Below are positions 9,605-36,407 of a stretch of 64,000 bases of DNA, piece after piece. Positions within the stretch are counted from its first letter, which is position 1. Every line of letters starts with the position of its first letter. The notes beneath the pieces are model-generated. The model was not told the origin of the DNA. It did not search any database and was given only the letters and a program-made list of their open reading frames with translations. This DNA is from Octopus sinensis (taxonomy: Eukaryota). The translations under genes were made by a program, and so were the position numbers. The stretch is taken from contig NC_043024.1 of NCBI RefSeq assembly GCF_006345805.1, positions 11,718,001 to 11,782,000 on the forward strand, in the 5' to 3' direction.

Positions 9605-10573
9605 TATATACATTACACACACACACATATATATATATGTTTGTGTGTCTGTTTGTCCCCCTAGCATTGATTGACAACCAATGCTGGTGTGTTTATGTCC
9701 CCGTCACTTAGTGGTTCGGCAAAAGAGCCCAATAGAATAAGTACTGGCTTCCAAAGAATAAGTCCCGGGGTTGATTTGGTCGACTAAAGGCGGTGCTCCA
9801 GCATGGCCGCAGTCAAATTATTGAAACAAGTAAAAGAGTAAAGATTGGTCAGCATTGTTGTTGGAGTTGATAGAGTTTGGAACATAGCCAGGTGATAGGT
9901 ATTTTATCTTCAAGAAACTTTTTCTCAGCTTTGACCCGAGTAACGGTAAATACAGGAGAACTAACAATTTAGCCAAAAAGAATGCGTGTCTTCGACCTTC
10001 GGCGATCTGGGGAAAATCTTTGGGAGGATTCATCGCTCTGTGATATGGTGACCCGTGCAAGAACTTGGGGGAAATGAAGAATGCATAATTCAGTAAAACA
10101 CACAAATACTCACGGATGATTATTTTGTGTTTTTAGTAAAAAAAAATGGCTTAGATGAGTGACTCAACATCACCGTTCTGTGTTCTCTTCGTGCCAGATC
10201 CAACTTTACCATTTATTCTCTTTGGTGTTTACTAAGACAAACAATAGCAAGACCTTGGTTTAGTTCTGTAATGTCAATCACCCTAAAAACTCTTTTTATT
10301 ATTCATAGTCTAAAGAAATATCATTCATTATGTAGATTGTGGGATGTTAACATGTTGAAATATTCCTGGATTTTGAGAATAGGGGGTTAGTCAATAACTA
10401 CCATGGCTCAGCTAGTAACTTATTTTACCAACCCCCAAAAGCACAGTCGACCTTCGTGGCATTTGAACTCAGAACATTACGACAGACGAAATGCTGCTAA
10501 GCTTTTCGCCTGGCGTGCTAACGTTTCTGCCAGAATGCTGCCTTAATTATGTTGAAATATTCATCAGAGAAAA

Positions 10574-10851
10574 GGCGGCGAGCTGGCAGAAACGTTAGGA
10601 CGCCTGGCGAAATGCTTAGCGGTATTTCGTCTGCCGCTACGTTCTGAGTTCAAATTCCGCCGAGGTCGACTTTGCCTTTCATCCTTTCGGGGTAGATTAA
10701 ATAAGTACCAGTTGTGCACTGGGGTCGATATAATCGACTTAATCCGTTTGTCTGTCCTTGTTTGTCCACTCTGTGTTTAGCCCCTTGTGGGTAGTAAAGA
10801 AATAGGTATTTCGTCTGCCGTTACGTTCTGAGTTCAAATTCCGCCGAGGTC
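10574..10851 (+). mobile_element. tRNA-derived SINE (family 3) with start of a second 184-bp internal-to-3' unit
   Basis: Head ggcggcgagctggcagaaacgttag with B box gagttcaaattcc. The 3' end aaagaaatag loops back to gtatttcgtc. Confidence 0.8.
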
Positions 10852-11309: not shown

Positions 11310-11456
11310 GTGACTGTTCCAATGAAACCAATGTAACCTGCGAATCCGACGGGTTCAACTACTTACTCGGAGAAGTATTACAATTTCCGTGTACCACATG
11401 TGAATGTACGTTGATTGGAGTAAAGTGTAATCAGACATGTGACCAGAATGAAACAG
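11310..11456 (+). CDS. Exon 2, VWC/FN1-like module GDCSNETNVTCESDGFNYLLGEVLQFPCTTCECTLIGVKCNQTCDQNET
   Basis: tttccag acceptor, gtattt donor, 147 bp, phase 1-1, open frame, C..DG..Y..GE....C..C.C....V.C pattern, four N-glycosylation sequons. Confidence 0.8.
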
Positions 11457-11474: not shown

Positions 11475-14400
11475 TATTTATTTTTATTTATTTATTTATT
11501 TAATCTAGTTTCAGCTCACGAGCTGTGGCCATGCTGGGGCACCGCCATTTGGTGTTGCTACATGATTTTACTTCACGAATGCTTTTTAGCAATTGCCATT
11601 TGGTGCATGAGAGAGTTCGACGCAGCTGCCCTCATCTGCACCTCCTGCCGTGAAGTTGGTTCATCAGCTCACGAGCTTTGGCCATGCTGGGCACCGCCAT
11701 TTGGTGTTGCTACATGATTTTACTTCACGAATGCTTTTTAGCAATTGCCATTTGGTGCATGAGAGAGTTCGACGCAGCTGCCCTCATCTTCACCTCCTGC
11801 CGTGAAGTTGGTTCATCAGCTCACGAGCTGTGGCCATGCTGGGGCACCGCCATTTGGTGTTGCTACATGATTTTACTTCACGAATGCTTTTTAGCAATTG
11901 CCATTTGGTGCATGAGAGAGTTCGACGCAGCTGCCCTCATCTGCACCTCCTGCCGTGAAGTTGGTTCATCAGCTCACGAGCTGTGGCCATGCTGGGGCAC
12001 CGCCATTTGGTGTTGCTACATGATTTTACTTCACGAATGCTTTTTAGCAATTGCCATTTGGTGCATGATGAGAGAGTTCGACGCAGCTGCCCTCATCTGC
12101 ACCTCCTGCCGTGAAGTTGGTTCATCAGCTCACGAGCTGTGGCCATGCTGGGGCACCGCCATTTGGTGTTGCTACATGATTTTACTTCACGAATGCTTTT
12201 TAGCAATTGCCATTTGGTGCATGAGAGAGTTCGACGCAGCTGCCCTCATCTTCACCTCCTGCCGTGAAGTTGGTTCATCAGCTCACGAGCTGTGGCCATG
12301 CTGGCACCGCCATTTGGTGTTGCTACATGATTTTACTTCACGAATGCTTTTTAGCAATTGCCATTTGGTGCATGAGAGAGTTCGACGCAGCTGCCCTCAT
12401 CTTCACCTCCTGCCGTGAAGTTGTTCGTTCATCAGCTCACGAGCTGTGGCCATGCTGGGGCACCGCCATTTGGTGTTGCTACATGATTTTAACTTCACGA
12501 ATGCTTTTTAGCAATTGCCATTTGGTGCATGAGAGAGTTCGACGCAGCTGCCCTCATCTGCACCTCCTGCCGTGAAGTTGGTTCATCAGCTCACGAGCTG
12601 TGGCCATGCTGGGGCACCGCCATTGGTGTTGCTACATGATTTACTTCACGAATGCTTTTAGCAATTGCCATTTGGTGCATGAGAGAGTTCGACGCAGCTG
12701 CCCTCATCTTCACCTCCTGCCGTGAAGTTGGTTCATCAGCTCACGAGCTGTGGCCATGCTGGGGCACCGCCATTTGGTGTTGCTACATGATTTTACTTCA
12801 CGAATGCTTTTTAGCAATTGCCATTTGGTGCATGAGAGAGTTCGACGCAGCTGCCCTCATCTTCACCTCCTGCCGTGAAGTTGGTTCATCAGCTCACGAG
12901 CTGTGGCCATGCTGGGGCACCGCCATTTGGTGTTGCTACATGATTTTACTTCACGAATGCTTTTTAGCAATGCCATTTGGTGCATGAGAGAGTTCGACGC
13001 AGCTGCCCTCATCTGCACCTCCTGCCGTGAAGTTGGTTCATCAGCTCACGAGCTGTGGCCATGCTGGGGCACCGCCATTTGGTGTTGCTACATGATTTTA
13101 CTTCACGAATGCTTTTTAGCAATTGCCATTTGGTGCATGAGAGAGTTCGACGCAGCTGCCCTCATCTTCACCTCCTGCCGTGAAGTTGGTTCATCAGCTC
13201 ACGAGCTGTGGCCATGCTGGGGCACCGCCATTTGGTGTTGCTACATGATTTTACTTCACGAATGCTTTTTAGCAATTGCCATTTGGTGCATGAGAGAGTT
13301 CGACGCAGCTGCCCTCATCTTCACCTCCTGCCTGCCGTGAAGTTGGTTCATCAGCTCACGAGCTGTGGCCATGCTGGGGCACCGCCATTTGGTGTTGCTA
13401 CATGATTTTACTTCACGAATGCTTTTTAGCAATTGCCATTTGGTGCATGAGAGAGTTCGACGCAGCTGCCCTCATCTTCACCTCCTGCCGTGAAGTTGGT
13501 TCATCAGCAGCTCACGAGCTGTGGCCATGCTGGGGCACCGCCATTTGGTGTTGCTACATGATTTTACTTCACGAATGCTTTTTAGCAATTGCCATTTGGT
13601 GCATGAGAGAGTTCGACGCAGCTGCCCTCATCTGCACCTCCTGCCGTGAAGTTGGTTCATCAGCTCACGAGCTGTGGCCATGCTGGGGCACCGCCATTTG
13701 GTGTTGCTACATGATTTTACTTCACGAATGCTTTTTAGCAAATGCCATTTGGTGCATGAGAGAGTTCGACGCAGCTGCCCTCATCTTCACCTCCTGCCGT
13801 GAAGTTGGTTCATCAGCTCACGAGCTGTGGCCATGCTGGGGCACCGCCATTTGGTGTTGCTACATGATTTTACTTCACGAATGCTTTTTAGCAATTGCCA
13901 TTTGGTGCATGAGAGAGTTCGACGCAGCTGCCCTCATCTTCACCTCCTGCCGTGAAGTTGGTTCATCAGCTCACGAGCTGTGGCCATGCTGGGGCACCGC
14001 CATTTGGTGTTGCTACATGATTTTACTTCACGAATGCTTTTTAGCAATTGCCATTTGGTGCATGAGAGAGTTCGACGCAGCTGCCCTCATCTCTCACCTC
14101 CTGCCGTGAAGTTGGTTCATCAGCTCACGAGCTGTGGCCATGCTGGGGCACCGCCATTTGGTGTTGCTACATGATTTTACTTCACGAATGCTTTTTAGCA
14201 ATTGCCATTTGGTGCATGAGAGAGTTCGACGCAGCTGCCCTCATCTTCACCTCCTGCCGTGAAGTTGGTTCATCAGCTCACGAGCTGTGGCCATGCTGGG
14301 GCACCGCCATTTGGTGTTGCTACATGATTTTACTTCACGAATGCTTTTTAGCAAATGCCATTTGGTGCATGAGAGAGTTCGACGCAGCTGCCCTCATCTT

Positions 14401-17400
14401 CACCTCCTGCCGTGAAGTTGGTTCATCAGCTCACGAGCTGTGGCCATGCTGGGGCACCGCCATTTGGTGTTGCTACATGATTTTACTTCACGAATGCTTT
14501 TTAGCAATTGCCATTTGGTGCATGAGAGAGTTCGACGCAGCTGCTCTCATCTTCACCTCCTGCCGTGAAGTTGGTTCATCAGCTCACGAGCTGTGGCCAT
14601 GCTGGGGCACCGCCATTTGGTGTTGCTACATGATTTTACTTCACGAATGCTTTTTAGCAATTGCCATTTGGTGCATGAGAGAGTTCGACGCAGCTGCCCT
14701 CATCTTCACCTCCTCCGTGAAGTTGGTTCATCAGCTCACGAGCTGTGGCCATGCTGGGGCACCGCCATTTGGTGTTGCTACATGATTTTACTTCACGAAT
14801 GCTTTTTAGCAATTGCCATTTGGTGCATGAGAGAGTTCGACGCAGCTGCCCTCATCTTCACCTCCTGCCGTGAAGTTGGTTGATCAGCTCACGAGCTGTG
14901 GCCATGCTGGGGCACCGCCATTTGGTGTTGCTACATGATTTTACTTCACGAATGCTTTTTAGCAATTGCCATTTGGTGCATGAGAGAGTTCGACGCAGCT
15001 GCCCTCATCTTCACCTCCTGCCGTGAAGTTGGTTCATCAGCTCACGAGCTGTGGCCATGCTGGGGCACCGCCATTTGGTGTGTGCTACATGATTTTACTT
15101 CACGAATGCTTTTTAGCAAATGCCATTTGGTGCATGAGAGAGTTCGACGCAGCTGCCCTCATCTTCACCTCCTGCCGTGAAGTTGGTTCATCAGCTCACG
15201 AGCTGTGGCCATGCTGGGGCACCGCCATTTGGTGTTGCTACATGATTTTACTTCACGAATGCTTTTTAGCAATTGCCATTTGGTGCATGAGAGAGTTCGA
15301 CGCAGCTGCCCTCATCTTCACCTCCTGCCGTGAAGTTGGTTCATCAGCTCACGAGCTGTGGCCATGCTGGGGCACCGCCATTTGGTGTTGCTACATGATT
15401 TTACTTCACGAATGCTTTTTAGCAATTGCCATTTGGTGCATGAGAGAGTTCGACGCAGCTGCCCTCATCTTCACCTCTACCTCCTGCCGTGAAGTTGGTT
15501 CATCAGCTCACGAGCTGTGGCCATGCTGGGGCACCGCCATTTGGTGTTGCTACACATGATTTTACTTCACGAATGCTTTTTAGCAAATGCCATTTGGTGC
15601 ATGAGAGAGTTCGACGCAGCTGTCCTCATCTGCACCTCCTGCCGTGAAGTTGGTTCATCAGCTCACGAGCTGTGGCCATGCTGGGGGCACCGCCATTTGG
15701 TGTTGCTACATGATTTTACTTCACGAATGCTTTTTAGCAAATGCCATTTGGTGCATGAGAGAGTTCGACGCAGCTGCCCTCATCTGCACCTCCTGCCGTG
15801 AAGTTGGTTCATCAGCTCACGAGCTGTGGCCATGCTGGGGCACCGCCATTTGGTGTTGCTACATGATTTTACTTCACGAATGCTTTTTAGCAATTGCCAT
15901 TTGGTGCATGAGAGAGTTCGACGCAGCTGCCCTCATCTTCACCTCCTGCCGTGAAGTTGGTTCATCAGCTCACGAGCTGTGGCCATGCTGGGGCACCGCC
16001 ATTTGGTGTTGCTACATGATTTTACTTCACGAATGCTTTTTAGCAATTGCCATTTGGTGCATGAGAGAGTTCGACGCAGCTGCCCTCATCTTCACCTCCT
16101 GCCGTGAAGTTAGTTCATCAGCTCACGAGCTGTGGCCATGCTGGGGCACCGCCATTTGGTTTGCTACATGATTTTACTTCACGAATGCTTTTTAGCAATT
16201 GCCATTTGGTGCATGAGAGAGTTCGACGCAGCTGCCCTCATCTGCACCTCCTGCCGTGAAGTTGGTTCATCAGCTCACGAGCTGTGGCCATGCTGGGGCA
16301 CCGCCATTTGGTGTTGCTACATGATTTTACTTCACGAATGCTTTTTAGCAAATGCCATTTTGGTGCATGAGAGAGTTCGACGCAGCTGCCCTCATCTGCA
16401 CCTCCTGCCGTGAAGTTGGTTCATCAGCTCACGAGCTGTGGCCATGCTGGGGCACCGCCATTTGGTGTTGCTACATGATTTTACTTCACGAATGCTTTTA
16501 GCAATTGCCATTTGGTGCATGAGAGAGTTCGACGCAGCTGCCCTCATCTTCACCTCCTGCCGTGAAGTTGGTTCATCAGCTCACGAGCTGTGGCCATGCT
16601 GGGCACCGCCATTTGGTGTTGCTACATGATTTTACTTCACGAATGCTTTTTAGCAATTGCCATTTGGTGCATGAGAGAGTTCGACGCAGCTGCCCTCATC
16701 TTCACCTCCTGCCGTGAAGTTGGTTCATCAGCTCACGAGCTGTGGCCATGCTGGGGCACCGCCATTTGGTGTTGCTACATGATTTTACTTCACGAATGCT
16801 TTTTAGCAATTGCCATTTGGTGCATGAGAGAGTTCGACGCAGCTGCCCTCATCTTCACCTCCTGCCGTGAAGTTGGTTCATCAGCTCACGAGCTGTGGCC
16901 ATGCTGGGGCACCGCCATTTGGTGTTGCTACACATGATTTTACTTCACGAATGCTTTTTAGCAATTGCCATTTGGTGCATGAGAGAGTTCGACGCAGCTG
17001 CCCTCATCTTCACCTCCTGCCGTGAAGTTGGTTCATCAGCTCACGAGCTGTGGCCATGCTGGGGCACCGCCATTTGGTGTTGCTACATGATTTTACTTCA
17101 CGAATGCTTTTTAGCAATTGCCATTTGGTGCATGAGAGAGTTCGACGCAGCTGCCCTCATCTTCACCTCCTGCCGTGAAGTTGGTTCATCAGCTCACGAG
17201 CTGTGGCCATGCTGGGGCACCGCCATTTGGTGTTGCTACATGATTTTACTTCACGAATGCTTTTAGCAATTGCCATTTGGTGCATGAGAGAGTTCGACGC
17301 AGCTGCCCTCATCTTCACCTCCTGCCGTGAAGTTGGTTCATCAGCTCACGAGCTGTGGCCATGCTGGGGCACCGCCATTTGGTGTTGCTACATGATTTTA

Positions 17401-20400
17401 CTTCACGAATGCTTTTTAGCAATTGCCATTTGGTGCATGAGAGAGTTCGACGCAGCTGCCCTCATCTGCACCTCCTGCCCTGCCGTGAAGTTGGTTCATC
17501 AGCTCACGAGCTGTGGCCATGCTGGGGCACCGCCATTTGGTGTTGCTACATGATTTTACTTCACGAATGCTTTTTAGCAATTGCCATTTGGTGCATGAGA
17601 GAGTTCGACGCAGCTGCCCTCATCTTCACCTCCTGCCGTGAAGTTGGTTCATCAGCTCACGAGCTGTGGCCATGCTGGGGCACCGCCATTTGGTGTTGCT
17701 ACATGATTTTACTTCACGAATGCTTTTTAGCAATTGCCATTTGGTGCATGAGAGAGTTCGACGCAGCTGCCCTCATCTGCACCTCCTGCCGTGAAGTTGG
17801 TTCATCAGCTCACGAGCTGTGGCCATGCTGGGGCACCGCCATTTGGTGTTGCTACATGATTTACTTCACGAATGCTTTTTAGCAATTGCCATTTGGTGCA
17901 TGAGAGAGTTCGACGCAGCTGCCCTCATCTTCACCTCCTGCCGTGAAGTTGGTTCATCAGCTCACGAGCTGTGGCCATGCTGGGGCACCGCCATTTGGTG
18001 TTGCTACATGATTTTACTTCACGAATGCTTTTTAGCAATTGCCATTTGGTGCATGAGAGAGTTCGACGCAGCTGCCCTCATCTTCACCTCCTGCCGTGAA
18101 GTTGGTTCATCAGCTCACGAGCTGTGGCCATGCTGGGGCACCGCCATTTGGTGTTGCTACATGATTTTACTTCACGAATGCTTTTTAGCAATTGCCATTT
18201 GGTGCATGAGAGAGTTCGACGCAGCTGCCCTCATCTTCACCTCCTGCCGTGAAGTTGGTTCATCAGCTCACGAGCTGTGGCCATGCTGGGGCACCGCCAT
18301 TTGGTGTTGCTACATGATTTTACTTCACGAATGCTTTTTAGCAATTGCCATTTGGTGCATGAGAGAGTTCGACGCAGCTGCCCTCATCTTCACCTCCTGC
18401 CGTGAAGTTGGTTCATCAGCTCACGAGCTGTGGCCATGATGGGGCACCGCCATTTGGTGTTGCTACATGATTTTACTTCACGAATGCTTTTTAGCAATTG
18501 CCATTTGGTGCATGAGAGAGTTCGACGCAGCTGCCCTCATCTTCACCTCCTGCCGTGAAGTTGGTTCATCAGCTCACGAGCTGTGGCCATGCTGGGGCAC
18601 CGCCATTTGGTGTTGCTACATGATTTTACTTCACGAATGCTTTTTAGCAATTGCCATTTGGTGCATGAGAGAGTTCGACGCAGCTGCCCTCATCTTCACC
18701 TCCTGCCGTGAAGTTGGTTCATCAGCTCACGAGCTGTGGCCATGCTGGGGCACCGCCATTTGGTGTTGCTACATGATTTTACTTCACGAATGCTTTTCAG
18801 CAATTGCCATTTGGTGCATGAGAGAGTTCGACGCAGCTGCCCTCATCTGCACCTCCTGCCGTGAAGTTGGTTCATCAGCTCACGAGCTGTGGCCATGCTG
18901 GGGCACCGCCATTTGGTGTTGCTACATGATTTTACTTCACGAATGCTTTTTAGCAAATGCCATTTGGTGCATGAGAGAGTTCGATGCAGCTGCCCTCATC
19001 TGCACCTCCTGCCGTGAAGTTGGTTCATCAGCTCACGAGCTGTGGCCATGCTGGGGCACCGCCATTTGGTGTTGCTACATGATTTTACTTCACGAATGCT
19101 TTTTAGCAATTGCCATTTGGTGCATGAGAGAGTTCGACGCAGCTGCCCTCATCTGCACCTCCTGCCGTGAAGTTGGTTCATCAGCTCACGAGCTGTGGCC
19201 ATGCTGGGGCACCGCCATTTGGTGTTGCTACATGATTTTACTTCACGAATGCTTTTTAGCAATTGCCATTTGGTGCATGAGAGAGTTCGACGCAACTGCC
19301 CTCATCTGCACCTCCTGCCGTGAAGTTGGTTCATCAGCTCACGAGCTGTGGCCATGCTGGGGCACCGCCATTTGGTGTTGCTACATGATTTTACTTCACG
19401 GATGCTTTTTAGCAATTGCCATTTGGTGCATGAGAGAGTTCGACGCAGCTGCCCTCATCTGCACCTCCTGCCGTGAAGTTGGTTCATCAGCTCACGAGCT
19501 GTGGCCATGCTGGGGCACCGCCATTTGGTGTTGCTACATGATTTTACTTCACGAATGCTTTTTAGCAATTGCCATTTGGTGCATGAGAGAGTTCGACGCA
19601 GCTGCCCTCATCTGCACCTCCTGCCGTGAAGTTGGTTCATCAGCTCTCACGAGCTGTGGCCATGCTGGGGCACCGCCATTTGGTGTTGCTACATGATTTT
19701 ACTTCACGAATGCTTTTTAGCAATTGCCATTTTGGTGCATGAGAGAGTTCGATGCAGCTGCCCTCATCTGCACCTCCTGCCGTGAAGTTGGTTCATCAGC
19801 TCACGAGCTGTGGCCATGCTGGGGCACCGCCATTTGGTGTTGCTACATGATTTTACTTCACGAATGCTTTTTAGCAATTGCCATTTGTGGCATGAGAGAG
19901 TTCGACGCAGCTGCCCTCATCTGCACCTCCTGCCGTGAAGTTGGTTCATCAGCTCACGAGCTGTGGCCATGCTGGGGCACCGCCATTTGGTGTTGCTACA
20001 TGATTTTACTTCACGAATGCTTTTTAGCAATTGCCATTTGGTGCATGAGAGAGTTCGACGCAGCTGCCCTCATCTTCACCTCCTGCCGTGAAGTTGGTTC
20101 ATCAGCTCACGAGCTGTGGCCATGCTGGGGCACCGCCATTTGGTGTTGCTACATGATTTTACTTCACGAATGCTTTTTAGCAATTGCCATTTGGTGCATG
20201 AGAGAGTTCGACGCAGCTGCCCTCATCTTCACCTCCTGCCGTGAAGTTGGTTCATCAGCTCACGAGCTGTGGCCATGCTGGGGCACCGCCATTTGGTGTT
20301 GCTACATGATTTTACTTCACGAAATGCTTTTTAGCAATTGCCATTTGGTGCATGAGAGAGTTCGACGCAGCTGCCCTCTTCTGCACCTCCTGCCGTGAAG

Positions 20401-23400
20401 TTGGTTCATCAGCTCACGAGCTGTGGCCATGCTGGGGCACCGCCATTTGGTGTTGCTACATGATTTTACTTCACGAAATGCTTTTTAGCAATTGCCATTT
20501 GGTGCATGAGAGAGTTCGACGCAGCTGCCCTCATCTGCACCTCCTGCCGTGAAGTTGGTTCATCAGCTCACGAGCTGTGGCCATGCTGGGGCACCGCCAT
20601 TTGGTGTTGCTACATGATTTTACTTCACGGATGCTTTTTAGAAAATGCCATTTGGTGCATGAGAGAGTTCGACGCAGCTGCCCTCATCTTCACCTCCTGC
20701 CGTGAAGTTGGTTCATCAGCTCACGAGCTGTGGCCATGCTGGGGCACCGCCATTTGGTGTTGCTACATGATTTTACTTCACGAATGCTTTTTAGCAATTG
20801 CCATTTGGTGCATGAGAGAGTTCGATGCAGCTGCCCTCATCTTCACCTCCTGCCGTGAAGTTGGTTCATCAGCTCACGAGCTGTGGCCATGCTGGGGCAC
20901 CGCCATTTGGTGTTGCTACATGATTTTACTTCACGAATGCTTTTTAGCAATTGCCATTTGGTGCATGAGAGAGTTCGATGCAGCTGCCCTCATCTGCACC
21001 TCCTGCCGTGAAGTTGGTTCATCAGCTCACGAGCTGTGGCCATGCTGGGGCACCGCCATTTGGTGTTGCTACATGATTTTACTTCACGAATGCTTTTTAG
21101 CAATTGCCATTTGGTGCATGAGAGAGTTCGATGCAGCTGCCCTCATCTTCACCTCCTGCCGTGAAGTTGGTTCATCAGCTCACGAGCTGTGGCCATGCTG
21201 GGGCACCGCCATTTGGTGTTGCTACATGATTTTACTTCACGAATGCTTTTTAGCAATTGCCATTTGGTGCATGAGAGAGTTCGACGCAGCTGCCCTCATC
21301 TGCACCTCCTGCCGTGAAGTTGGTTCATCAGCTCACGAGCTGTGGCCATGCTGGGGCACCGCCATTTGGTGTTGCTACATGATTTTACTTCACGAATGCT
21401 TTTTAGCAATTGCCATTTGGTGCATGAGAGAGTTCGACGCAGCTGCCCTCATCTGCACCTCCTGCCGTGAAGTTGGTTCATCAGCTCTCACGAGCTGTGG
21501 CCATGCTGGGGCACCGCCATTTGGTGTTGCTACATGATTTTACTTCACGAATGCTTTTTAGCAATTGCCATTTGGTGCATGAGAGAGTTCGACGCAGCTG
21601 CCCTCATCTGCACCTCCTGCCGTGAAGTTGGTTCATCAGCTCACGAGCTGTGGCCATGCTGGGGCACCGCCATTTGGTGTTGCTACATGATTTTACTTCA
21701 CGAATGCTTTTTAGCAATTGCCATTTGGTGCATGAGAGAGTTCGACGCAGCTGCCCTCATCTGCACCTCCTGCCGTGAAGTTGGTTCATCAGCTCACGAG
21801 CTGTGGCCATGCTGGGGCACCGCCATTTGGTGTTGCTACATGATTTTACTTCACGAATGCTTTTTAGCAATTGCCATTTGGTGCATGAGAGAGTTCGACG
21901 CAGCTGCCCTCATCTTCACCTCCTGCCGTGAAGTTGGTTCATCAGCTCACGAGCTGTGGCCATGCTGGGGCACCGCCATTTGGTGTTGCTACATGATTTT
22001 ACTTCACGGATGCTTTTTAGCAATTGCCATTTGGTGCATGAGAGAGTTCGACGCAGCTGCCCTCATCTTCACCTCCTGCCGTGAAGTTGGTTCATCAGCT
22101 CACGAGCTGTGGCCATGCTGGGGCACCGCCATTTGGTGTTGCTACATTTTTACTTCACGGATGCTTTTTAGAAAATGCCATTTGGTGCATGAGAGAGTTC
22201 GACGCAGCTGCCCTCATCTGCACCTCCTGCCGTGAAGTTGGTTCATCAGCTCACGAGCTGTGGCCATGCTGGGGCACCGCCATTTGGTGTTGCTACTGAT
22301 TTTACTTCATTACTTCACGGATGCTTTTTAGCAATTGCCATTTGTGCATGAGAGAGTTCGACGCAGCTGCCCTCATCTTCACCTCCTGCCGTGAAGTTGG
22401 TTCATCAGCTCACGAGCTGTGGCCATGCTGGGGCACCGCCATTTGGTGTTGCTACATGATTTTACTTCACGGATGCTTTTTAGCAATTGCCATTTGGTGC
22501 ATGAGAGAGTTCGACGCAGCTGCCCTCATCTTCACCTCCTGCCGTGAAGTTGGTTCATCAGCTCACGTGCTGTGGCCATGCTGGGGCACCGCCATTTGGT
22601 GTTGCTACATGATTTTACTTCACGGATGCTTTTTAGAAAATGCCATTTGGTGCATGAGAGAGTTCGACGCAGCTGCCCTCATCTGCACCTCCTGCCGTGA
22701 AGTTGGTTCATCAGCTCACGAGCTGTGGCCATGCTGGGGCACCGCCATTTGGTGTTGCTACATGATTTTACTTCACGGATGCTTTTTAGCAATTGCCATT
22801 TGGTGCATGAGAGAGTTCGACGCAGCTGCCCTCATCTTCACCTCCTGCCGTGAAGTTGGTTCATCAGCTCACGAGCTGTGGCCATGCTGGGGCACCGCCA
22901 TTTGGTGTTGCTACATGATTTTACTTCACGATGCTTTTTAGCAATTGCCATTTGGTGCATGAGAGAGTTCGACGCAGCTGCCCTCATCTGCACCTCCTGC
23001 CGTGAAGTTGGTTCATCAGCTCACGAGCTGTGGCCATGCTGGGGCACCGCCATTTGGTGTTGCTACATGATTTTACTTCACGGATGCTTTTTAGAAATGC
23101 CATTTGGTGCATGAGAGAGTTCGACGCAGCTGCCCTCATCTGCACCTCCTGCCGTGAAGTTGGTTCCAGCTCACGAGCTGTGGCCATGCTGGGGCACCGC
23201 CATTTGGTGTTGCTACATGATTTTACTTCACGGATGCTTTTTAGAAAATGCCATTTGGTGCATGAGAGAGTTCGACGCAGCTGCCCTCATCTGCACCTCC
23301 TGCCGTGAAGTTGGTTCATCAGCTCACGAGCTGTGGCCATGCTGGGGCACACCGCCATTTGGTGTTGCTACATGATTTTACTTACTTCACGAATGCTTTT

Positions 23401-26400
23401 TAGCAATTGCCATTTGGTGCATGAGAGAGTTCGACGCAGCTGCCCTCATCTGCACCTCCTGCCGTGAAGTTGGTTCATCAGCTCACGAGCTGTGGCCATG
23501 CTGGGGCACCGCCATTTGGTGTTGCTACATGATTTTACTTCACGAATGCTTTTTAGCAATTGCCATTTGGTGCATGAGAGAGTTCGACGCAGCTGCCCTC
23601 ATCTGCACCTCCTGCCGTGAAGTTGGTTCATCAGCTCACGAGCTGTGGCCATGCTGGGGCACCGCCATTTGGTGTTGCTACATGATTTTACTTCACGAAT
23701 GCTTTTTAGAAAATGCCATTTGGTGCATGAGAGAGTTCGACGCAGCTGCCCTCATCTGCACCTCCTGCCGTGAAGTTGGTTCATCAGCTCACGAGCTGTG
23801 GCCATGCTGGGGCACCGCCATTTGGTGTTGCTACATGATTTTACTTCACGAATGCTTTTTAGCAATTGCCATTTGGTGCATGAGAGAGTTCGACGCAGCT
23901 GCCCTCATCTGCACCTCCTGCCGTGAAGTTGGTTCATCAGCTCACGAGCTGTGGCCATGCTGGGGCACCGCCATTTGGTGTTGCTACATGATTTTACTTC
24001 ACGAAATGCTTTTTAGCAATTGCCATTTGGTGCATGAGAGAGTTCGACGCAGCTGCCCTCATCTGCACCTCCTGCCGTGAAGTTGGTTCATCAGCTCACG
24101 AGCTGTGGCCATGCTGGGGCACCGCCATTTGGTGTTGCTACATGATTTTACTTCACGAATGCTTTTTAGCAATTGCCATTTGGTGCATGAGAGAGTTCGA
24201 CGCAGCTGCCCTCATCTGCACCTCCTGCCGTGAAGTTGGTTCATCAGCTCACGAGCTGTGGCCATGCTGGGGCACCGCCATTTGTGTTGCTACATGATTT
24301 TACTTCACGAATGCTTTTTAGCAATTGCCATTTGGTGCATGAGAGAGTTCGACGCAGCTGCCCTCATCTTCACCTCCTGCCGTGAAGTTGGTTCATCAGC
24401 TCACGAGCTGTGGCCATGCTGGGGCACCGCCATTTGGTGTTGCTACATGATTTTACTTCACGAATGCTTTTTAGCAATTGCCATTTGGTGCATGAGAGAG
24501 TTCGACGCAGCTGCCCTCATCTGCACCTCCTGCCTTGAAGTTGGTTCATCAGCTCACGAGCTGTGGCCATGCTGGGGCACACCATTTGGTGTTGCTACAT
24601 GATTTTACTTCACGAATGCTTTTTAGCAATTGCCATTTGGTGCATGAGAGAGTTCGACGCAACTGCCCTCATCTGCACCTCCTGCCGTGAAGTTGGTTCA
24701 TCAGCTCACGAGCTGTGGCCATGCTGGGGCACCGCCATTTGGTGTTGCTACATGATTTTACTTCACGAATGCTTTTTAGAAAATGCCATTTGGTGCATGA
24801 GAGAGTTCGACGCAGCTGCCCCTCATCTTCACCTCCTGCCGTGAAGTTGGTTCATCAGCTCACGAGCTGTGGCCATGCTGGGGCACCGCCATTTGGTGTT
24901 GCTACATGATTTTACTTCACGAATGCTTTTTAGAAAATTGCCATTTGGTGCATGAGAGAGTTCGACGCAGCTGCCCTCATCTTCACCTCCTGCCGTGAAG
25001 TTGGTTCATCAGCTCACGAGCTGTGGCCATGCTGGGGCACCGCCATTTGGTGTTGCTACATGATTTTACTTCACGAATGCTTTTTAGCAATTGCCATTTG
25101 GTGCATGAGAGAGTTCGACGCAGCTGCCCTCATCTTCACCTCCTGCCGTGAAGTTGGTTCATCAGCTCACGAGCTGTGGCCATGCTGGGGCACCGCCATT
25201 TGGTGTTGCTACATGATTTTACTTCACGAATGCTTTTTAGCAATTGCCATTTGGTGCATGAGAGAGTTCGACGCAGCTGCCCTCATCTTCACCTCCTGCC
25301 GTGAAGTTGGTTCATCAGCTCACGAGCTGTGGCCATGCTGGGGCACCGCCATTTGGTGTTGCTACATGATTTTACTTCACGAATGCTTTTTAGCAATTGC
25401 CATTTGGTGCATGAGAGAGTTCGACGCAGCTGCCCTCATCTGCACCTCCTGCCGTGAAGTTGGTTCATCAGCTCACGAGCTGTGGCCATGCTGGGGCACC
25501 GCCATTTGGTGTTGCTACATGATTTTACTTCACGAATGCTTTTTAGCAATTGCCATTTGGTGCATGAGAGAGTTCGACGCAGCTGCCCTCATCTGCACCT
25601 CCTGCCGTGAAGTTGGTTCATCAGCTCACGAGCTGTGGCCATGCTGGGGCACCGCCATTTGGTGTTGCTACATGATTTTACTTCACGAATGCTTTTTAGC
25701 AATTGCCATTTGGTGCATGAGAGAGTTCGACGCAGCTGCCCTCATCTGCACCTCCTGCCGTGAAGTTGGTTCATCAGCTCACGAGCTGTGGCCATGCTGG
25801 GCACCGCCATTTGGTGTTGCTACATGATTTTACTTCACGAATGCTTTTTAGAAAATGCCATTTGGTGCATGAGAGAGTTCGACGCAGCTGCCCTCATCTG
25901 CACCTCCTGCCGTGAAGTTGGTTCATCAGCTCACGAGCTGTGGCCATGCTGGGGCACCGCCATTTGGTGTTGCTACATGATTTTACTTCACGAATGCTTT
26001 TTAGCAATTGCCATTTGGTGCATGAGAGAGTTCGACGCAGCTGCCCTCATCTTCACCTCCTGCCGTGAAGTTGGTTCATCAGCTCACGAGCTGTGGCCAT
26101 GCTGGGGCACCGCCATTTGGTGTTGCTACATGATTTTACTTCACGAATGCTTTTTAGCAATTGCCATTTGGTGCATGAGAGAGTTCGACGCAGCTGCCCT
26201 CATCTGCACCTCCTGCCGTGAAGTTGGTTCATCAGCTCACGAGCTGTGGCCATGCTGGGGCACCGCCATTTGGTGTTGCTACATGATTTTACTTCACGAA
26301 TGCTTTTTAGCAATTGCCATTTGGTGCATGAGAGAGTTCGACGCAGCTGCCCTCATCTCCACCTCCTGCCGTGAAGTTGGTTCATCAGCTCACGAGCTGT

Positions 26401-29400
26401 GGCCATGCTGGGGCACCGCCATTTGGTGTTGCTACATGATTTTACTTCACGAATGCTTTTTAGCAATTGCCATTTGGTGCATGAGAGAGTTCGACGCAGC
26501 TGCCCTCATCTTCACCTCCTGCCGTGAAGTTGGTTCATCAGCTCACGAGCTGTGGCCATGCTGGGGCACCGCCATTTGGTGTTGCTACATGATTTTACTT
26601 CACGAATGCTTTTTAGCAATTGCCATTTGGTGCATGAGAGAGTTCGACGCAGCTGCCCTCATCTTCACCTCCTGCCGTGAAGTTGGTTCATCAGCTCACG
26701 AGCTGTGGCCATGATGGGGCACCGCCATTTGGTGTTGCTACATGATTTTACTTCACGAATGCTTTTTAGCAATTGCCATTTGGTGCATGAGAGAGTTCGA
26801 CGCAGCTGCCCTCATCTTCACCTCCTGCCGTGAAGTTGGTTCATCAGCTCACGAGCTGTGGCCATGCTGGGGCACCGCCATTTGGTGTTGCTACATGATT
26901 TTACTTCACGAATGCTTTTTAGCAATTGCCATTTGGTGCATGAGAGAGTTCGATGCAGCTGCCCTCATCTGCACCTCCTCCTGCCGTGAAGTTGGTTCAT
27001 CAGCTCACGAGCTGTGGCCATGCTGGGGCACCGCCATTTGGTGTTGCTACATGATTTTACTTCACGAATGCTTTTTAGCAATTGCCATTTGGTGCATGAG
27101 AGAGTTCGACGCAGCTGCCCTCATCTCACCTCCTGCCGTGAAGTTGGTTCATCAGCTCACGAGCTGTGGCCATGCTGGGGCACCGCCATTTGGTGTTGCT
27201 ACATGATTTTACTTCACGAATGCTTTTTAGCAATTGCCATTTGGTGCATGAGAGAGTTCGATGCAGCTGCCCTCATCTTCACCTCCTGCCGTGAAGTTGG
27301 TTCATCAGCTCACGAGCTGTGGCCATGCTGGGGCACCGCCATTTGGTGTTGCTACATGATTTTACTTCACGAATGCTTTTTAGCAATTGCCATTTGGTGC
27401 ATGAGAGAGTTCGACGCAGCTGCCCTCATCTGCACCTCCTGCCGTGAAGTTGGTTCATCAGCTCACGAGCTGTGGCCATGCTGGGGCACCGCCATTTGGT
27501 GTTGCTACATGATTTTACTTCACGAATGCTTTTTAGCAATTGCCATTTGGTGCATGAGAGAGTTCGACGCAGCTGCCCTCATCTGCACCTCCTGCCGTGA
27601 AGTTGGTTCATCAGCTCACGAGCTGTGGCCATGCTGGGGCACCGCCATTTGGTGTTGCTACATGATTTTACTTCACGAATGCTTTTTAGCAATTGCCATT
27701 TGGTGCATGAGAGAGTTCGATGCAGCTGCCCTCATCTGCACCTCCTGCCGTGAAGTTGGTTCATCAGCTCACGAGCTGTGGCCATGCTGGGGCACCGCCA
27801 TTTGGTGTTGCTACATGATTTTACTTCACGGATGCTTTTTAGCAATTGCCATTTGGTGCATGAGAGAGTTCGACGCAGCTGCCCTCATCTTCACCTCCTG
27901 CCGTGAAGTTGGTTCATCAGCTCACGAGCTGTGGCCATGCTGGGGCACCGCCATTTGGTGTTGCTACATGATTTTACTTCACGAATGCTTTTTAGCAATT
28001 GCCATTTGGTGCATGAGAGAGTTCGACGCAGCTGCCCTCATCTTCACCTCCTGCCGTGAAGTTGGTTCATCAGCTCACGAGCTGTGGCCATGCTGGGGCA
28101 CCGCCATTTGGTGTTGCTACATGATTTTACTTCACGAATGCTTTTTAGCAATTGCCATTTGGTGCATGAGAGAGTTCGACGCAGCTGCCCTCATCTTCAC
28201 CTCCTGCCGTGAAGTTGGTTCATCAGCTCACGAGCTGTGGCCATGCTGGGGCACCGCCATTTGGTGTTGCTACATGATTTTACTTCACGAATGCTTTTTA
28301 GCAATTGCCATTTGGTGCATGAGAGAGTTCGACGCAGCTGCCCTCATCTTCACCTCCTGCCGTGAAGTTGGTTCATCAGCTCACGAGCTGTGGCCATGCT
28401 GGGGCACCGCCATTTGGTGTTGCTACATGATTTTACTTCACGAATGCTTTTTAGCAATTGCCATTTGGTGCATGAGAGAGTTCGACGCAGCTGCCCTCAT
28501 CTTCACCTCCTGCCGTGAAGTTGGTTCATCAGCTCACGAGCTGTGGCCATGCTGGGGCACCGCCATTTGGTGTTGCTACATGATTTTACTTCACGAATGC
28601 TTTTAGCAATTGCCATTTGGTGCATGAGAGAGTTCGACGCAGCTGCCCTCATCTTCACCTCCTGCCGTGAAGTTGGTTCATCAGCTCACGAGCTGTGGCC
28701 ATGCTGGGGCACCGCCATTTGGTGTTGCTACATGATTTTACTTCACGAATGCTTTTTAGCAATTGCCATTTGGTGCATGAGAGAGTTCGACGCAGCTGCC
28801 CTCATCTGCACCTCCTGCCGTGAAGTTGGTTCATCAGCTCACGAGCTGTGGCCATGCTGGGCACCGCCATTTGGTGTTGCTACATGATTTTACTTCACGA
28901 ATGCTTTTTAGCAATTGCCATTTGGTGCATGAGAGAGTTCGACGCAGCTGCCCTCATCTGCACCTCCTGCCGTGAAGTTGGTTCATCAGCTCACGAGCTG
29001 TGGCCATGCTGGGGCACCGCCATTTGGTGTTGCTACATGATTTTACTTCACGAATGCTTTTTAGCAATTGCCATTTGGTGCATGAGAGAGTTCGACGCAG
29101 CTGCCCTCATCTGCACCTCCTGCCGTGAAGTTGGTTCATCAGCTCACGAGCTGTGGCCATGCTGGGGCACCGCCATTTGGTGTTGCTACATGATTTTACT
29201 TCACGAATGCTTTTAGCAATTGCCATTTGGTGCATGAGAGAGTTCGATGCAGCTGCCCTCATCTGCACCTCCTGCCGTGAAGTTGGTTCATCAGCTCACG
29301 AGCTGTGGCCATGCTGGGGCACCGCCATTTGGTGTTGCTACTATGATTTTACTTCACGGATGCTTTTTAGCAATTGCCATTTGGTGCATGAGAGAGTTCG

Positions 29401-30896
29401 ACGCAGCTGCCCTCATCTTCACCTCCTGCCGTGAAGTTGGTTCATCAGCTCACGAGCTGTGGCCATGCTGGGGCACCGCCATTTGGTGTTGCTACATGAT
29501 TTTACTTCACGAATGCTTTTAGCAATTGCCATTTGGTGCATGAGAGAGTTCGACGCAGCTGCTGCCCTCATCTTCACCTCCTGCCGTGAAGTTGGTTCAT
29601 CAGCTCACGAGCTGTGGCCATGCTGGGGCACCCGCCATTTGGTGTTGCTACATGATTTTACTTCACGAATGCTTTTTAGCAATTGCCATTTGGTGCATGA
29701 GAGAGTTCGACGCAGCTGCCCTCATCTTCACCTCCTGCCGTGAAGTTGGTTCATCAGCTCACGAGCTGTGGCCATGATGGGGCACCGCCATTTGGTGTTG
29801 CTACATGATTTTACTTCACGAATGCTTTTTAGCAATTGCCATTTGGTGCATGAGAGAGTTCGACGCAGCTGCCCTCATCTTCACCTCCTGCCGTGAAGTT
29901 GGTTCATCAGCTCACGAGCTGTGGCCATGCTGGGGCACCGCCATTTGGTGTTGCTACATGATTTTACTTCACGAATGCTTTTTAGCAATTGCCATTTGGT
30001 GCATGAGAGAGTTCGACGTAGCTGCCCTCATCTGCACCTCCTGCCGTGAAGTTGGTTCATCAGCTCACGAGCTGTGGCCATGCTGGGGCACCGCCATTTG
30101 GTGTTGCTACATGATTTTACTTCACGAATGCTTTTTAGCAATTGCCATTTGGTGCATGAGAGAGTTCGACGCAGCTGCCCTCATCTTCACCTCCTGCCGT
30201 GAAGTTGGTTCATCAGCTCACGAGCTGTGGCCATGCTGGGGCACCGCCATTTGGTGTTGCTACATGATTTTACTTCACGAATGCTTTTTAGCAATTGCCA
30301 TTTGGTGCATGAGAGAGTTCGACGCAGCTGCCCTCATCTTCACCCTCCTGCCGTGAAGTTGGTTCATCAGCTCACGAGCTGTGGCCATGCTGGGGCACCG
30401 CCATTTGGTGTTGCTACATGATTTTACTTCACGAATGCTTTTTAGCAATTGCCATTTGGTGCATGAGAGAGTTCGACGCAGCTGCCCTCATCTTCACCTC
30501 CTGCCGTGAAGTTGGTTCATCAGCTCACGAGCTGTGGCCATGCTGGGGCACCGCCATTTGGTGTTGCTACATGATTTTACTTCACGAATGCTTTTTAGCA
30601 ATTGCCATTTGGTGCATGAGAGAGTTCGACGCAGCTGCCCTCATCTGCACCTCCTGCCGTGAAGTTGGTTCATCAGCTCACGAGCTGTGGCCATGCTGGG
30701 GCACCGCCATTTGGTGTTGCTACATGATTTTACTTCACGGATGCTTTTTAGCAATTGCCATTTGGTGCATGAGAGAGTTCGATGCAGCTGCCCTCATCTG
30801 CACCTCCTGCCGTGAAGTTGGTTCATCCGGGACACCGGACAGGAAGAGATCCAGTTTCATTTTCAAGACATCTGCATCCACCCCATGCAGGTCTCT

Positions 30897-30897
<1 letters not shown>
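11475..30897 (-). mobile_element. 5'-truncated CR1-group LINE whose last 153 bp are amplified into an array of about 126 tandem copies (11511-30825)
   Basis: Minus strand: unique 5' part [24 protein letters not shown] (30826-30897), then repeats of [29 protein letters not shown] plus 3' UTR, then the true terminus ctgaaactaga and an (AAAT)n tail at 11475-11503. 19315/153 = 126.2 units. Confidence 0.9.
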
Positions 30898-30928
<31 letters not shown>

Positions 30929-31276
30929 AATATATATACATATATACACAAATACATATATACACATATACATAAATATATACATATATTTATACATACA
31001 TACATATATATATATATACATATACATACATATATATATATACATATATATATATACATATATACATACATACACACACACATATATATACATAAATACA
31101 CAAATAAATATACATAAATATATACATATATATACACATACATACATATATATATATACATATACATACACATACATATATATATATATATACATATATA
31201 CATACATATATATATATACATACATACATACACACACACACATATATATACATAAATAGACACATAAATATACATA
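30898..31276. repeat. Compound (TA)n/(TACA)n microsatellite
   Basis: Direct inspection. Confidence 0.95.
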
Positions 31277-31448
31277 AATTTCCAGCAAGATATTATTAGT
31301 ATGGTTGTATGGATGTAGTCAGTTTTTTTTAATGAAAATTCCAGATGTTTTGAACGAATACAAAAGAAATTTAAAAAGCAAGACCTTGAAATGTAATTAT
31401 AATTTTTTACTGGAAAGAATCACAAACAACAATTAAAAACCTAAAACC

Positions 31449-32151
31449 GGATCTTTTCGGTTTGACCGGCAGTTTTAACATAATTTCTAGGTAACTAAAT
31501 AAACACTTTTAAACTTCGTATACTGGTAGAATGTGTTTATAAAACATCTTTTTCTCTTGGCTTTATTGAGAAAATCCTATAGTTTGTAAGATATTTGGTT
31601 CTTTTATTCTTGCATTTCGGCAATTTCAACCAATCAATGACCGTCTATTGAGGTGAAAACATTCTGTGCCGTATGAATATGTCTCTCATTTAAGAAACAG
31701 ATTGGGTTTATTTACATTTTTGAAGAAAAAAAGATACCCTTCCCTCACCCCTAACCCTAACTAACCCTAAATCTAGAATAGATTGAAATGCAATAGATCG
31801 ATACTAGGGTCATAATTATGGTGACAATTTTAGGGTTAGGGTCAGGGGTTAGGGGTGGGGGGAAGGGTATCTTTTTTTCTTCACAAATGTAAATAAACCC
31901 AATCTGTTTCTTAAACGAGGTACATATTCATACGGCACAAAATGTTTTCACCTCAATAGACGCCATTGATTGTTTGAAAATGCCGAAATGCAAGAAATTA
32001 AAGACCAAATATCTTACAAAACATATAATTTTCTCAATAAAGCCAAGAGAAAAAGATGTCTTATAAACACATTCTACCAGTATACGAAGTTTAAAAGTGT
32101 TTAGTTACCTAGAAATTATGTTAAAAACTGCCGTTCAAACCGAAAAGATCC
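31449..32151. mobile_element. Foldback/MITE with about 320-bp inverted arms ending internally in CCCTAA/TTAGGG
   Basis: ggatcttttcggtttg...ccctaaccctaa (31449-31770) is mirrored at 31829-32151. Partial related arm at 33708-33920. Confidence 0.85.
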
Positions 32152-32189
32152 CTAAAAGCTTGACCCCTTGAATACAGTATGTAACTATG

Positions 32190-32479: not shown

Positions 32480-32915
32480 AATATACATCTGGAAGATCCT
32501 AGAAGGACTTGTCCCAAACTTTGGCATCGAGAGTTACACAAATGTTAGACCTGGGCGCCACTGCATGGTGGCAAGGACTCCAAATTTGCCATCAAGATGT
32601 AGGACAAGATACTGTGATAGCCTGGGCTCCAGAGGCCCACAGCTCTTCAATATTCTCCCAAAGAACCTAAGAGACCTGCATGGGGTGGATGCAGATGTCT
32701 TTAAAATAAAACTGGATCTCTTCCTGTCAGGTGTCCCAACTTCACGGCAGGAGGTGCAGATGAGGGCAGCTGCGTCGAACTCTCTCATGCACCAAATGGC
32801 ATTTGCTAAAAAGCATTCGTGGAGTAAAATCATGTAGCAACACCAAATGGCGGTGCCCCAGCATGGCCACAGCTCGTGAGCTTAAACGAGATAAAATAAA
32901 AAATAAAATAAATAA
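32480..32915 (+). mobile_element. 5'-truncated CR1-group LINE, same family as the array, single 3' end
   Basis: ...[39 protein letters not shown](del)[27 protein letters not shown], then 3' UTR and TAAAA tail. Confidence 0.85.
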
Positions 32916-33096
32916 AATGGGTATTTTGATTCCACCCTTCAATTTCAAGTTTTCTTCGATTTTGTAATTGGATGAATTTATATTGAATTCATTTATTTTG
33001 TTTATTGCATGCTTAAGACCGTTAATTGAAGGGACAAATCCATTTTAAAGGTGAATCCTTCAACTAGCTTTGATCATATAATTATGTTCTATTTTG

Positions 33097-33562: not shown

Positions 33563-33677
33563 GTGAAACATGTCACCATAACTACTTTGTATAATGTCGG
33601 CGAACAGTTCCAGAAAGGACCATTTCGGTATTGCGAATGCGTAGGGAAAGAATCTCTTAATTGCTTTCTGAACTCGT
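33563..33677 (+). CDS. Exon 3, 4-Cys module GETCHHN/TLYNVGEQFQKGPFRYCECVGKESLNCFLNS with an apparent frameshift
   Basis: ttattcag acceptor and gtatgt donor. It is 115 bp (not a multiple of 3) and the frame breaks near 33583. Cys spacing matches the other modules. Confidence 0.6.
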
Positions 33678-34213
33678 GTATGTTATTTTTCTTTCTATTA
33701 AATCTGTTGGATCTTTTCCGGATCTTTTCCTTTTGAACGGCAGTTTTCAACACAATTTCTAGTTAACTAAACACTTTCAAACTTCGTATACTGGTAGAAT
33801 GTGTCAAAATAAAACATTTATTTCTCTTGGCTTTCTTGAGAAAATTGTAATTTGTAAGTTTAGCATAGTTTAATTTTTCGAATTTTAACCAATCGATGGC
33901 CTCTATTTAGCTAAAATCATTTGCTTCTATACTACCTGAGATGTTTTAGACTATAACTGTTGTCACTTCCGTGTTATACGGTGGATTATACCAAGTAATA
34001 TACGTAGATCTATTCGTCTTTACCGGATACTGTAGATTATATATCACAATTCCTCTTTCAAGCAACTATAAGCTAAAGCCTTGTTATTTTAAGTTGAATG
34101 ATCCTTAAATATCTGTACATTCAATTACGCCTTAGATTAATCTTAACGTTACATTTGTATCAGCTACTTATTTCTGATCTGTCTAATCTATAAATTATTT
34201 TCACATTATTCAG

Positions 34214-34327
34214 TTACAAACTGTTCGATTTTGAATGAGCAGTTGGGAGGGGTCATTCCGCTCGGAGAACCATTAACGGAGTGCGAATGCTACACGAACG
34301 GGTCCTTCATATGCATTTATCAACGAG
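34214..34327 (+). CDS. Exon 4, 4-Cys module xTNCSILNEQLGGVIPLGEPLTECECYTNGSFICIYQR
   Basis: ttattcag / gtaagt, 114 bp, phase 1-1, open. The upstream intron is homologous to that of exon 9. Confidence 0.8.
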
Positions 34328-35910: not shown

Positions 35911-36407
35911 TTTCTTATATAAACGAAGCCATGATTATTTTGTTCTGTTTAGCATAATTGACTTATAATCTCTGCTATTTATATACGGGCTTCTGCACAT
36001 TTTCCATCTATCAAAGTCGACTCTCCAAACTTTGGACGATTCAGATTTTGAGCTTCTTAATGTCGTTGTGCACCATATTTATGATAGTCCACTCCGTTAC
36101 CTGACGATCTTTCTCTATGGCCGTCATTAATTTCCCAGGATTATCATAGATAATGATTTGAACACCTATGATGAACTGTGGTGTCCTTTTTCAGTTCCAG
36201 CATTTAGAATGATTTTTTTCTCTTGATAGAATTAAAATATTCTTGCCAGAAGCGTTCCAATTTCATACGAATTACGTGTTTCTTGGGTAACAAAGAATGC
36301 TTTTGGCTATTACCGTTAAGACACCCGTATTGTATGGTAATATACGTGGGTCTATTCCTCTTAACCCGACGCTTGTTAATATACATCACAATTCCTCCTT
36401 CAAACCA

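Follow-up and report, generated by a model that had tools for sequence, protein, structure and literature searches.

How does the tail of a retrotransposon become a satellite? A locus in Octopus sinensis raises this question in concrete form: a 19-kb tandem array, whose 153-bp unit is the end of a long interspersed nuclear element (LINE), lies in a probable intron with the remains of the parent element still attached on both sides. The array falls in a 64,000-nucleotide stretch of contig NC_043024.1 (assembly GCF_006345805.1, positions 11,718,001 to 11,782,000 of the forward strand), which we call the window and whose positions are counted from its first letter. The account that we favor, and to which we assign a probability of roughly 60%, is that a head-to-tail dimer of the unit arose in the source LINE lineage, was carried to this site by retrotransposition, and was then expanded in place in the probable intron. 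The array and its immediate surroundings are as follows; here and below, a slash marks a breakpoint or an edge.

Positions 11479 to 11510, minus strand: true 3' terminus of the LINE copy that carries the array (copy A), consisting of AACTAGAT (11503-11510) and then a (TAAA)n-type microsatellite tail.
Positions 11511 to 30825, minus strand: array of about 126 units of 153 bp, each comprising the end of open reading frame 2 (ORF2) and 69 nt of the 3' untranslated region (3' UTR), with two predicted hairpins.
Positions 30826 to 30897, minus strand: 72-bp ORF2 remnant from upstream of the unit, ending at the 5'-truncation point of copy A.
Positions 30898 to 31279, no strand assigned: (TA)n/(TACA)n microsatellite that abuts the 5'-truncation point of copy A.
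Junction strings: tandem junction, GTGAGCTGA/TGAACCAAC; true end, GTGAGCTGA/AACTAGAT; internal site, CCAGA/TGAACC.

Tandem Repeats Finder (TRF) places the array at 11511-30827 with a period of 153, 126.0 copies, 98% matches, 0% indels and a score of 36999, and splitting the array with a fuzzy anchor also yields 126 units, which bears out the number of head-to-tail units given in the initial annotation of this DNA. Of the 126 units, 75 are exactly 153 bp, with the remainder at 150-159 bp. There are 70 distinct unit sequences, and the two most frequent are seen 29 times and 17 times. Given its monomer of more than 100 bp, repeated head to tail at high identity, the array qualifies as a tandem repeat of satellite type, and a chance origin is no concern. 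It occupies 30% of the window and has a G+C content of 51%, versus 38% in the rest of the window.

The identity of the unit can be read from the minus strand, on which it runs from TGAACC to GAGCTGA and holds the last 27 codons of ORF2 with their stop codon, followed by the initial 69 nt of the 3' UTR. The reading frame of the unit continues from the flanking ORF2 sequence, and in a second copy of the element (copy B, described below) the frame stays open further upstream. A word-index search with the C-terminal segment returned two relatives, one of them from Octopus vulgaris, and an exhaustive HMMER search with a three-sequence profile of the segment matched 1431 proteins. The long proteins among the profile matches (973-1017 aa) align at their extreme C-terminus and carry Exo_endo_phos_2 or Exo_endo_phos together with RVT_1, so that the apurinic/apyrimidinic endonuclease (APE) and reverse transcriptase (RT) of a non-long terminal repeat (non-LTR) retrotransposon are seen indirectly, through the domains of full-length relatives. 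The closest of these relatives, P0003 (984 aa), is 67% identical over 94 aa (residues 880-973), and its best relatives of solved structure are L1 ORF2p and R2 proteins. By sequence comparison, then, and by way of relatives, as the copies in the window are 5'-truncated, the unit is the C-terminal end of the ORF2 of an APE+RT LINE plus 3' UTR. The frame, the profile matches and the agreement with two further copies in the window all uphold the earlier description of the unit as the ORF2 C-terminus and 3' UTR of an antisense LINE. The array unit differs from each of the two units of copy B at 2 of 153 sites and is ~95% identical to copy C, and the units at the array edges match copy B at 98-99% by blastn; the monomer thus has its homolog in a specific part of a transposable element (TE), namely the ORF2 end and 3' UTR.

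The 3' UTR provides some further indication of the kind of LINE that is involved. The contig that encodes P0003 shares the 3' UTR box GGTGCCCCAGCATGGCC..CAGC..GCTGAAAC, which is followed there by an (AAATT)n tail, and folding predicts two adjacent hairpins in the 3' UTRs of both the focal element and the P0003 contig. Hairpin 1 contains one compensatory pair (U-A to C-G) between the focal family and the P0003 contig; for the hairpin adjacent to the junction, no compensatory changes were seen among the relatives, only conservation of sequence. Downstream of the hairpins, both the focal family and the P0003 contig have AAAC..(AAAT)n or (AAATT)n instead of poly(A), as in a CR1-type 3' end. A structured 3' UTR with a microsatellite tail is shared with L2 and other 'stringent' LINEs and is not diagnostic for CR1. 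The combination fits CR1/L2-type LINEs, of which the CR1 group named in the initial annotation would be one possibility.

Both edges of the array can be read against copies that lack it. On the plus strand the left edge reads (tttatttat)n ttaATCTAGTT/TCAGCTCACGAG, which on the minus strand corresponds to GAGCTGA/AACTAGAT(TAAA)n, and the terminus AACTAGAT is common to copies A, B and C and to a copy from Octopus bimaculoides. Across a 377-bp alignment that takes in two units, the right edge agrees with copy B at 98%, and the 72-bp remnant (30826-30897) aligns with copies B and C and contains four substitutions private to copy A. As first proposed, then, the parent's own tail is in place at the left edge, and at the right edge there are 72 bp of ORF2 from upstream of the unit. 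When the internal junction GAGCTGA/TGAACC is compared with CCCGGA/TGAACC and GAGCTGA/AACTAG, the proposed microhomology of 2 nt (GA, common to both joined ends) is read directly. No internal junction retains the terminal AACTAGAT or the microsatellite, and the breakpoint is the same in all 125 junctions. The unit boundary lies 1 nt beyond a 14-nt palindrome, CAGCTCGTGAGCTG.

Was the unit first duplicated at this site? Self-BLAST of the window identified two more copies of the family, both on the plus strand, and these bear on the answer.

Positions 58542 to 59092, plus strand: copy B, 5'-truncated, with 220 bp of upstream ORF2, two units, AACTAGAT and an (AAAAT)n tail.
Positions 32488 to 32918, plus strand: copy C, 5'-truncated, with a single unit, a 9-bp deletion and its own (AAAAT)n tail.

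Copy B holds exactly two units (58762-58914 and 58915-59067), joined by a GAGCTGA/TGAACC junction identical to that of the array. Because copy B has 220 bp of upstream ORF2 and the array copy has 72 bp, copy B cannot be a descendant of the array copy. Moreover, copy B has none of the derived array variants and retains the ancestral C at unit position 25 in both of its units, and at one of the two sites where the array consensus differs from copy B, 56 array units still hold the allele of copy B. The occurrence of an identical junction in two independent insertions implies that the founding duplication most likely predates the insertion of copy A; the dimer most likely arose once in the source LINE lineage and then moved by retrotransposition on two or more occasions, each time leaving a 5'-truncated copy, to judge from the sequences of these copies. 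The initial annotation had viewed the satellite as caught at birth at this locus, a view that is not supported in the light of a separate insertion with two units, the same junction and longer 5' sequence. The 5'-most units of copies A and B have in common a G/A difference at a CpG site; we weighed this as a sign of a dimer ancestral to both and dropped it, because CpG transitions recur and the A is also present in the Octopus bimaculoides copy.

The 9-bp deletion of copy C, GATGAACCA (32737-32745 region), lies between two CCA repeats and starts 2 nt from the duplication breakpoint. Together with the 153-bp duplication, the deletion brings to two the independent rearrangements that this site shows in three copies. 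The Octopus bimaculoides copy (LGKD02012541.1, 11334-11678) is a single-unit copy of the focal LINE family with 86-87% identity, and the fragment is overlapped by a gene model annotated as 'small heat shock protein hspM-like'. It is flanked on both sides by TA/TACA microsatellite, and the array copy adjoins a microsatellite of the same kind. The focal family may have a preference for TA-rich microsatellite targets. When the open antisense frame of the unit was used, as a proxy, for a search at the protein level, no other arrays were found; the one weak match was an Octopus bimaculoides protein that overlaps the single-unit copy (86-87% identity). Exact-pattern scans of metagenome and viral contigs for the 3' UTR box gave 0 matches.

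From these observations a sequence of events can be proposed. A 5'-truncated copy of an octopod non-LTR retrotransposon appears to sit antisense in the probable intron of a gene with repeated cysteine-rich exons. In the first step, a single head-to-tail duplication of the last 153 bp would have taken place in the source LINE lineage by way of the 2-nt microhomology. One possibility is slippage during replication, or a template switch, mediated by microhomology beside the palindrome CAGCTCGTGAGCTG. Alternatively, the resident AACTAGAT(AAAT)n tail may have served as primer for a second round of target-primed reverse transcription (TPRT), with the 5' end joined through microhomology. Slippage or template switching and tail-primed TPRT would both predict the observed junction. 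A plain double insertion of the type described by McGurk and Barbash, in which an intact 3' end, often with a target-site duplication (TSD), is joined to a 5'-truncated neighbor, was rejected as the origin since all junctions read GAGCTGA/TGAACC and are without the tail; the tail-primed variant was retained. In the second step, suggested by the shared junction in two insertions, copies bearing the dimer would have been retrotransposed, with the one at 58.5 kb remaining a dimer and the other landing at 11.5 kb, 22 nt downstream of a splice donor. In the third step, suggested by the structure of the variants, this second copy would have grown in place to ~126 units by out-of-register exchange or replication slippage.

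The variants within the array provide the evidence for growth in place. At alignment column 159, 68 units have a derived T and 56, including both edge units, have a G that is ancestral in that it is present in copies B and C. Four other variants, each found in 8-15 units, are locally clustered, and units 70-77 display a 3-unit higher-order pattern (GAACG/GCTCT/GCTCT, the slashes here separating units). Adjacent units have a substitution distance of 0.88%, compared with an array mean of 1.08% over all pairs, and the trend of similarity with distance is not monotonic, as units 80-100 apart are as similar as neighbors. Such variant runs and local patterns are probably the product of repeated unequal exchange or slippage of blocks of one to several units rather than of one-step synthesis. 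The divergence of units from their consensus is 0.67%, and singleton substitutions amount to 0.11% per site. By comparison, the four private changes in the 72-bp remnant are more than expected at 0.67% per site (Poisson P ~0.0015), which speaks against the very young parent insertion that had been envisaged. The youth of the array does not obviously extend to its parent; the insertion seems to antedate the array as it now stands, or else stems from a slightly different source.

The intronic setting of the array is deduced from a series of exon-like segments, three of which define the interval in question.

Positions 11310 to 11456, plus strand: putative host exon of 147 nt, phase 1-1, cysteine-rich (DCSNETNVTCESDGFNYLLGEVLQFPCTTCECTLIGVKCNQTCDQNET), with AG at 11308-9 and GT at 11457-8.
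Positions 33563 to 33677, plus strand: next exon-like segment, 115 nt, one over the phase 1-1 length (114), frameshifted.
Positions 34214 to 34327, plus strand: next intact phase 1-1 cysteine-rich exon-like segment, with donor GTAAGTTTGTTTA.

These segments belong to a paralogous plus-strand series with AG/GT signals and the cysteine pattern ...C.Y..G....G......C.C...G...C..., which continues downstream of 34214-34327 with ten more exon-like segments, the donor GTAAGTTTGTTTA being common to these ten and the segment at 34214-34327. The segment at 33563-33677 is homologous to its neighbors with a broken frame (ETCHHNYFV*, then ..LYNVGEQFQKGPFRYCECVGKESLNC in another frame), so that either the exon has decayed or the consensus of the assembly is wrong by 1 nt. 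Duplicated exons that end at 44295, 46677, 49311 and 56812 differ from one another by 2-8% (up to 10 of 125 nt), with nearly all of the differences changing an amino acid, whereas their 250-bp intron flanks differ by only 0-2%. This excess of nonsynonymous change in the exons relative to the flanks argues that the exons are real coding sequence, and it suggests either diversifying selection or conversion limited to the introns. The array, which from its position between putative exons is probably intronic, starts 54 nt beyond the GT donor of the 11310-11456 segment (GT at 11457-8, array from 11511), in agreement with the distance to a splice donor noted at the outset, and this donor is plausible. 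The exon-like interval from 11456 to 33563 is 22,106 nt, of which the LINE and array cover 19,419 bp, and the probable intron would be enlarged about eight-fold by the array. The expansion to a 22-kb intron that had been described thus holds in that the array accounts for ~19.4 kb of the interval, with the qualification that the interval is bounded by exon-like segments.

Several points weigh against the favored account. The family was examined in three copies, all within one 64-kb window, and the junction of copy B could in principle have come from gene conversion by the array or from a recurrent site-specific event. The deletion in copy C so near the breakpoint hints at a fragile or hot site, and the remnant may owe its four private changes to differences between source subfamilies rather than to age. 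Although there is no sign of an assembler loop, as far as the letters of the contig can tell, the number of units is an assembly figure. For the host gene, the concatenated exon peptides had no database homolog at E <= 0.001, and Pfam gave only weak, sub-threshold matches to Fn1_2 and VWC2L.

How, then, do other explanations compare? The element may have inserted with a single unit, with the first duplication arising locally by slippage and the second unit of copy B arising by conversion or in an independent event. The attachment of the parent at both ends and the 2-nt microhomology at the junction agree with such a local origin, as does the rearrangement of copy C 2 nt from the breakpoint if the site is prone to slippage. 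The base-identical junction in copy B, however, belongs to another insertion 28 kb away in the opposite orientation, copy B has none of the derived variants of the array and keeps the ancestral C at unit position 25 in both units, and it is improbable that the same event arose independently at a microhomology of 2 nt; we consider a local first duplication unlikely. A different possibility is that the array was made mostly by reverse transcription, either because a long 3' array in the source was copied or because the RT switched templates or TPRT was repeatedly primed on the tail. Each unit includes the predicted 3' hairpins of the element, a second, tail-primed TPRT predicts a tail-less junction with 5' microhomology, a related LINE family at 57.2-58.2 kb also has tandem 3' ends, and tail-to-internal LINE tandems made by transposition are documented in Drosophila (PMC5932611). 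Independent events of this kind, on the other hand, predict varied 5'-truncation points, whereas 125 of 125 junctions are identical, and the variants shared by blocks of units and the local higher-order patterns need duplication of multi-unit segments at the DNA level. A 19-kb cDNA that truncates 72 bp beyond the array would also be surprising, given that the other copies in the window are <0.6 kb, and we rate reverse transcription as the main source of the array as improbable.

The array might also be a shorter, real tandem repeat that was inflated by the assembler. Long arrays of 98-99% identity are difficult to assemble, 51 units are changed in length by 1-6 bp, in several cases within homopolymers (GGGG, TTTTT) as long-read errors would do, and there is a 1-nt frameshift in a nearby exon-like segment; some consensus errors in the array region are likely. 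Against inflation, however, stand the 70 distinct unit sequences, a longest exact internal repeat of 620 bp, variants that form structured local clusters with no duplicated multi-kb blocks, and flanks that are both unique and correctly oriented, and an artefact of this type seems improbable. Finally, the array could be a functional element of the host gene under selection, acting through small RNAs or through regulation of splicing or chromatin. Its position 54 nt from the donor site, its higher G+C content (51% vs 38%) and one plus-strand frame that is open through the unit are compatible with this idea. A 51-codon open frame in one of six frames is expected by chance, however, a scan of the window against Rfam found nothing, and the other TE-derived tandem arrays in the window suggest a general mutational tendency. 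We view a function as very improbable; the array is most likely neutral DNA without function.

The further tandem arrays of the window are listed here.

Positions 57207 to 58228, minus strand: related LINE family, ~69% identical to the focal family, with the ORF2 end and 3' UTR followed by four tandem copies.
Positions 36551 to 37485, minus strand: RTE-like LINE array, 158 bp x5.9, 97% identity, from the ORF2 C-terminal region (..ITKHRLAYFGHIMGRKSLEKDIMLGMVSGKRGRG..).
Positions 39488 to 40656 (x6.4) and 41075 to 41624 (x3.0): arrays of a 184-bp unit (..GTTCTGAGTTCAAATTCCGCCGAGGTCGAC..) that resembles a short interspersed nuclear element (SINE), 93-95% identity.

The extra copies of the related family each consist of the last ~95 bp of the element with its own (GT)n. 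Tail units of this family recur at 44555-44842, 47075-47547 and 49747-50188, within ~2.6-kb segmental duplications that carry host exons. The RTE-like array has the downstream coding end of its parent attached at ~36420-36540, and a direct repeat of ~140 bp (36240-36380 and 37500-37640) brackets this entire arrangement. The SINE-like 184-bp unit is also dispersed in the window, for example at 10400-10720. Two foldback or inverted-repeat-like elements (1790-2129 and 31400-32160) have short telomere-like TTAGGG/CCCTAA runs at their centers, and an arm fragment related to them lies at 33700-33880. A scan of the window for tRNAs was negative. Tandem amplification of the ends of mobile elements seems to be common in the Octopus sinensis genome, which makes the focal array less singular.

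It is conceivable that an active octopod LINE lineage spreads a duplicated 3' module, made up of the ORF2 end and the hairpins that the RT recognizes, and so seeds or enlarges arrays at many loci, driven by its own TPRT on resident tails or by the palindrome at the unit boundary. We regard this as a speculative and unlikely extension of the account that we favor. Such seeding would explain the three LINE-end tandem arrays of the window (153 bp x126, ~95 bp+(GT)n x5, and 158 bp x6), and, if true, would constitute a retrotransposition-coupled route from LINE tail to satellite.

Satellites derived from LINE tails are already known, and the octopod array is a good specimen of a known process rather than a new process. 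As summarized in PMC9659126, which cites Li and Leung 2006, the monomer of the chicken HinfI satellite (SCR1) consists of the 3' UTR and partial ORF2 of CR1. The octopod monomer has the same makeup of LINE 3' UTR and partial ORF2, as far as that summary describes it. Unlike HinfI, it covers the last 153 bp only, occupies a single, probably intronic locus with the parent's tail and ORF2 still attached, and is matched in a separate insertion by a dimer that would be an intermediate and has the identical junction; its source is an octopod LINE of APE+RT type. The common cetacean satellite (from the L1 3' end), PROsat and Pvc20 are derived from L1, and 18HT is derived from HeT-A (PMC9659126). The octopod array resembles the cetacean and other L1 satellites in that its monomer comes from the 3'-terminal part or ORF2 of a LINE. 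Those satellites are old, abundant, multi-locus, heterochromatic and parentless, whereas the octopod array is young, ~99% homogeneous, 19 kb long, euchromatic and probably intronic.

In Drosophila, tandem dimers of TEs give rise to arrays, as for R1 and Bari1 (McGurk and Barbash 2018, PMC5932611); tandems of non-LTR elements are typically 'tail-to-internal', with a 3' end joined to a 5'-truncated neighbor (PMC5932611), and a two-stage model of a small tandem followed by expansion through unequal exchange is standard (PMC5932611; PMC12628747). The octopod array would follow the same two stages, a small tandem first and unequal exchange later. It departs from the Drosophila double insertions, with their intact 3' end and often a TSD, in that its junctions are without the last 8 nt and the microsatellite, and in that the dimer itself was apparently retrotransposed to two sites. 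Tandem repeats carried by mobile elements are also described as expanding in the Helitrons and Helentrons of oysters and Drosophila and in the 3' UTR of plant Ogre elements, as these are outlined in PMC12628747 and PMC7004042. With these systems, as outlined there, the octopod case shares a short element-borne tandem repeat that is dispersed and occasionally expanded to a long array; its carrier, in contrast, is the 3' end of a LINE, and its repeat includes coding sequence and terminal hairpins. No description of a LINE-derived satellite in octopus was found in the literature searched.

Intermediates between TEs and satellites are rarely preserved, and the window holds a monomer, a dimer and a 126-mer with the parent attached at both ends. 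This series is useful for understanding how a LINE tail is converted to a satellite and the rate at which such arrays turn over, and it provides a concrete case of an array beside a plausible splice donor that would enlarge an intron. If LINEs that bear the dimer are common and seed arrays repeatedly, they would represent a retrotransposon-borne route for the dispersal of satellites in the repeat-rich genomes of cephalopods.

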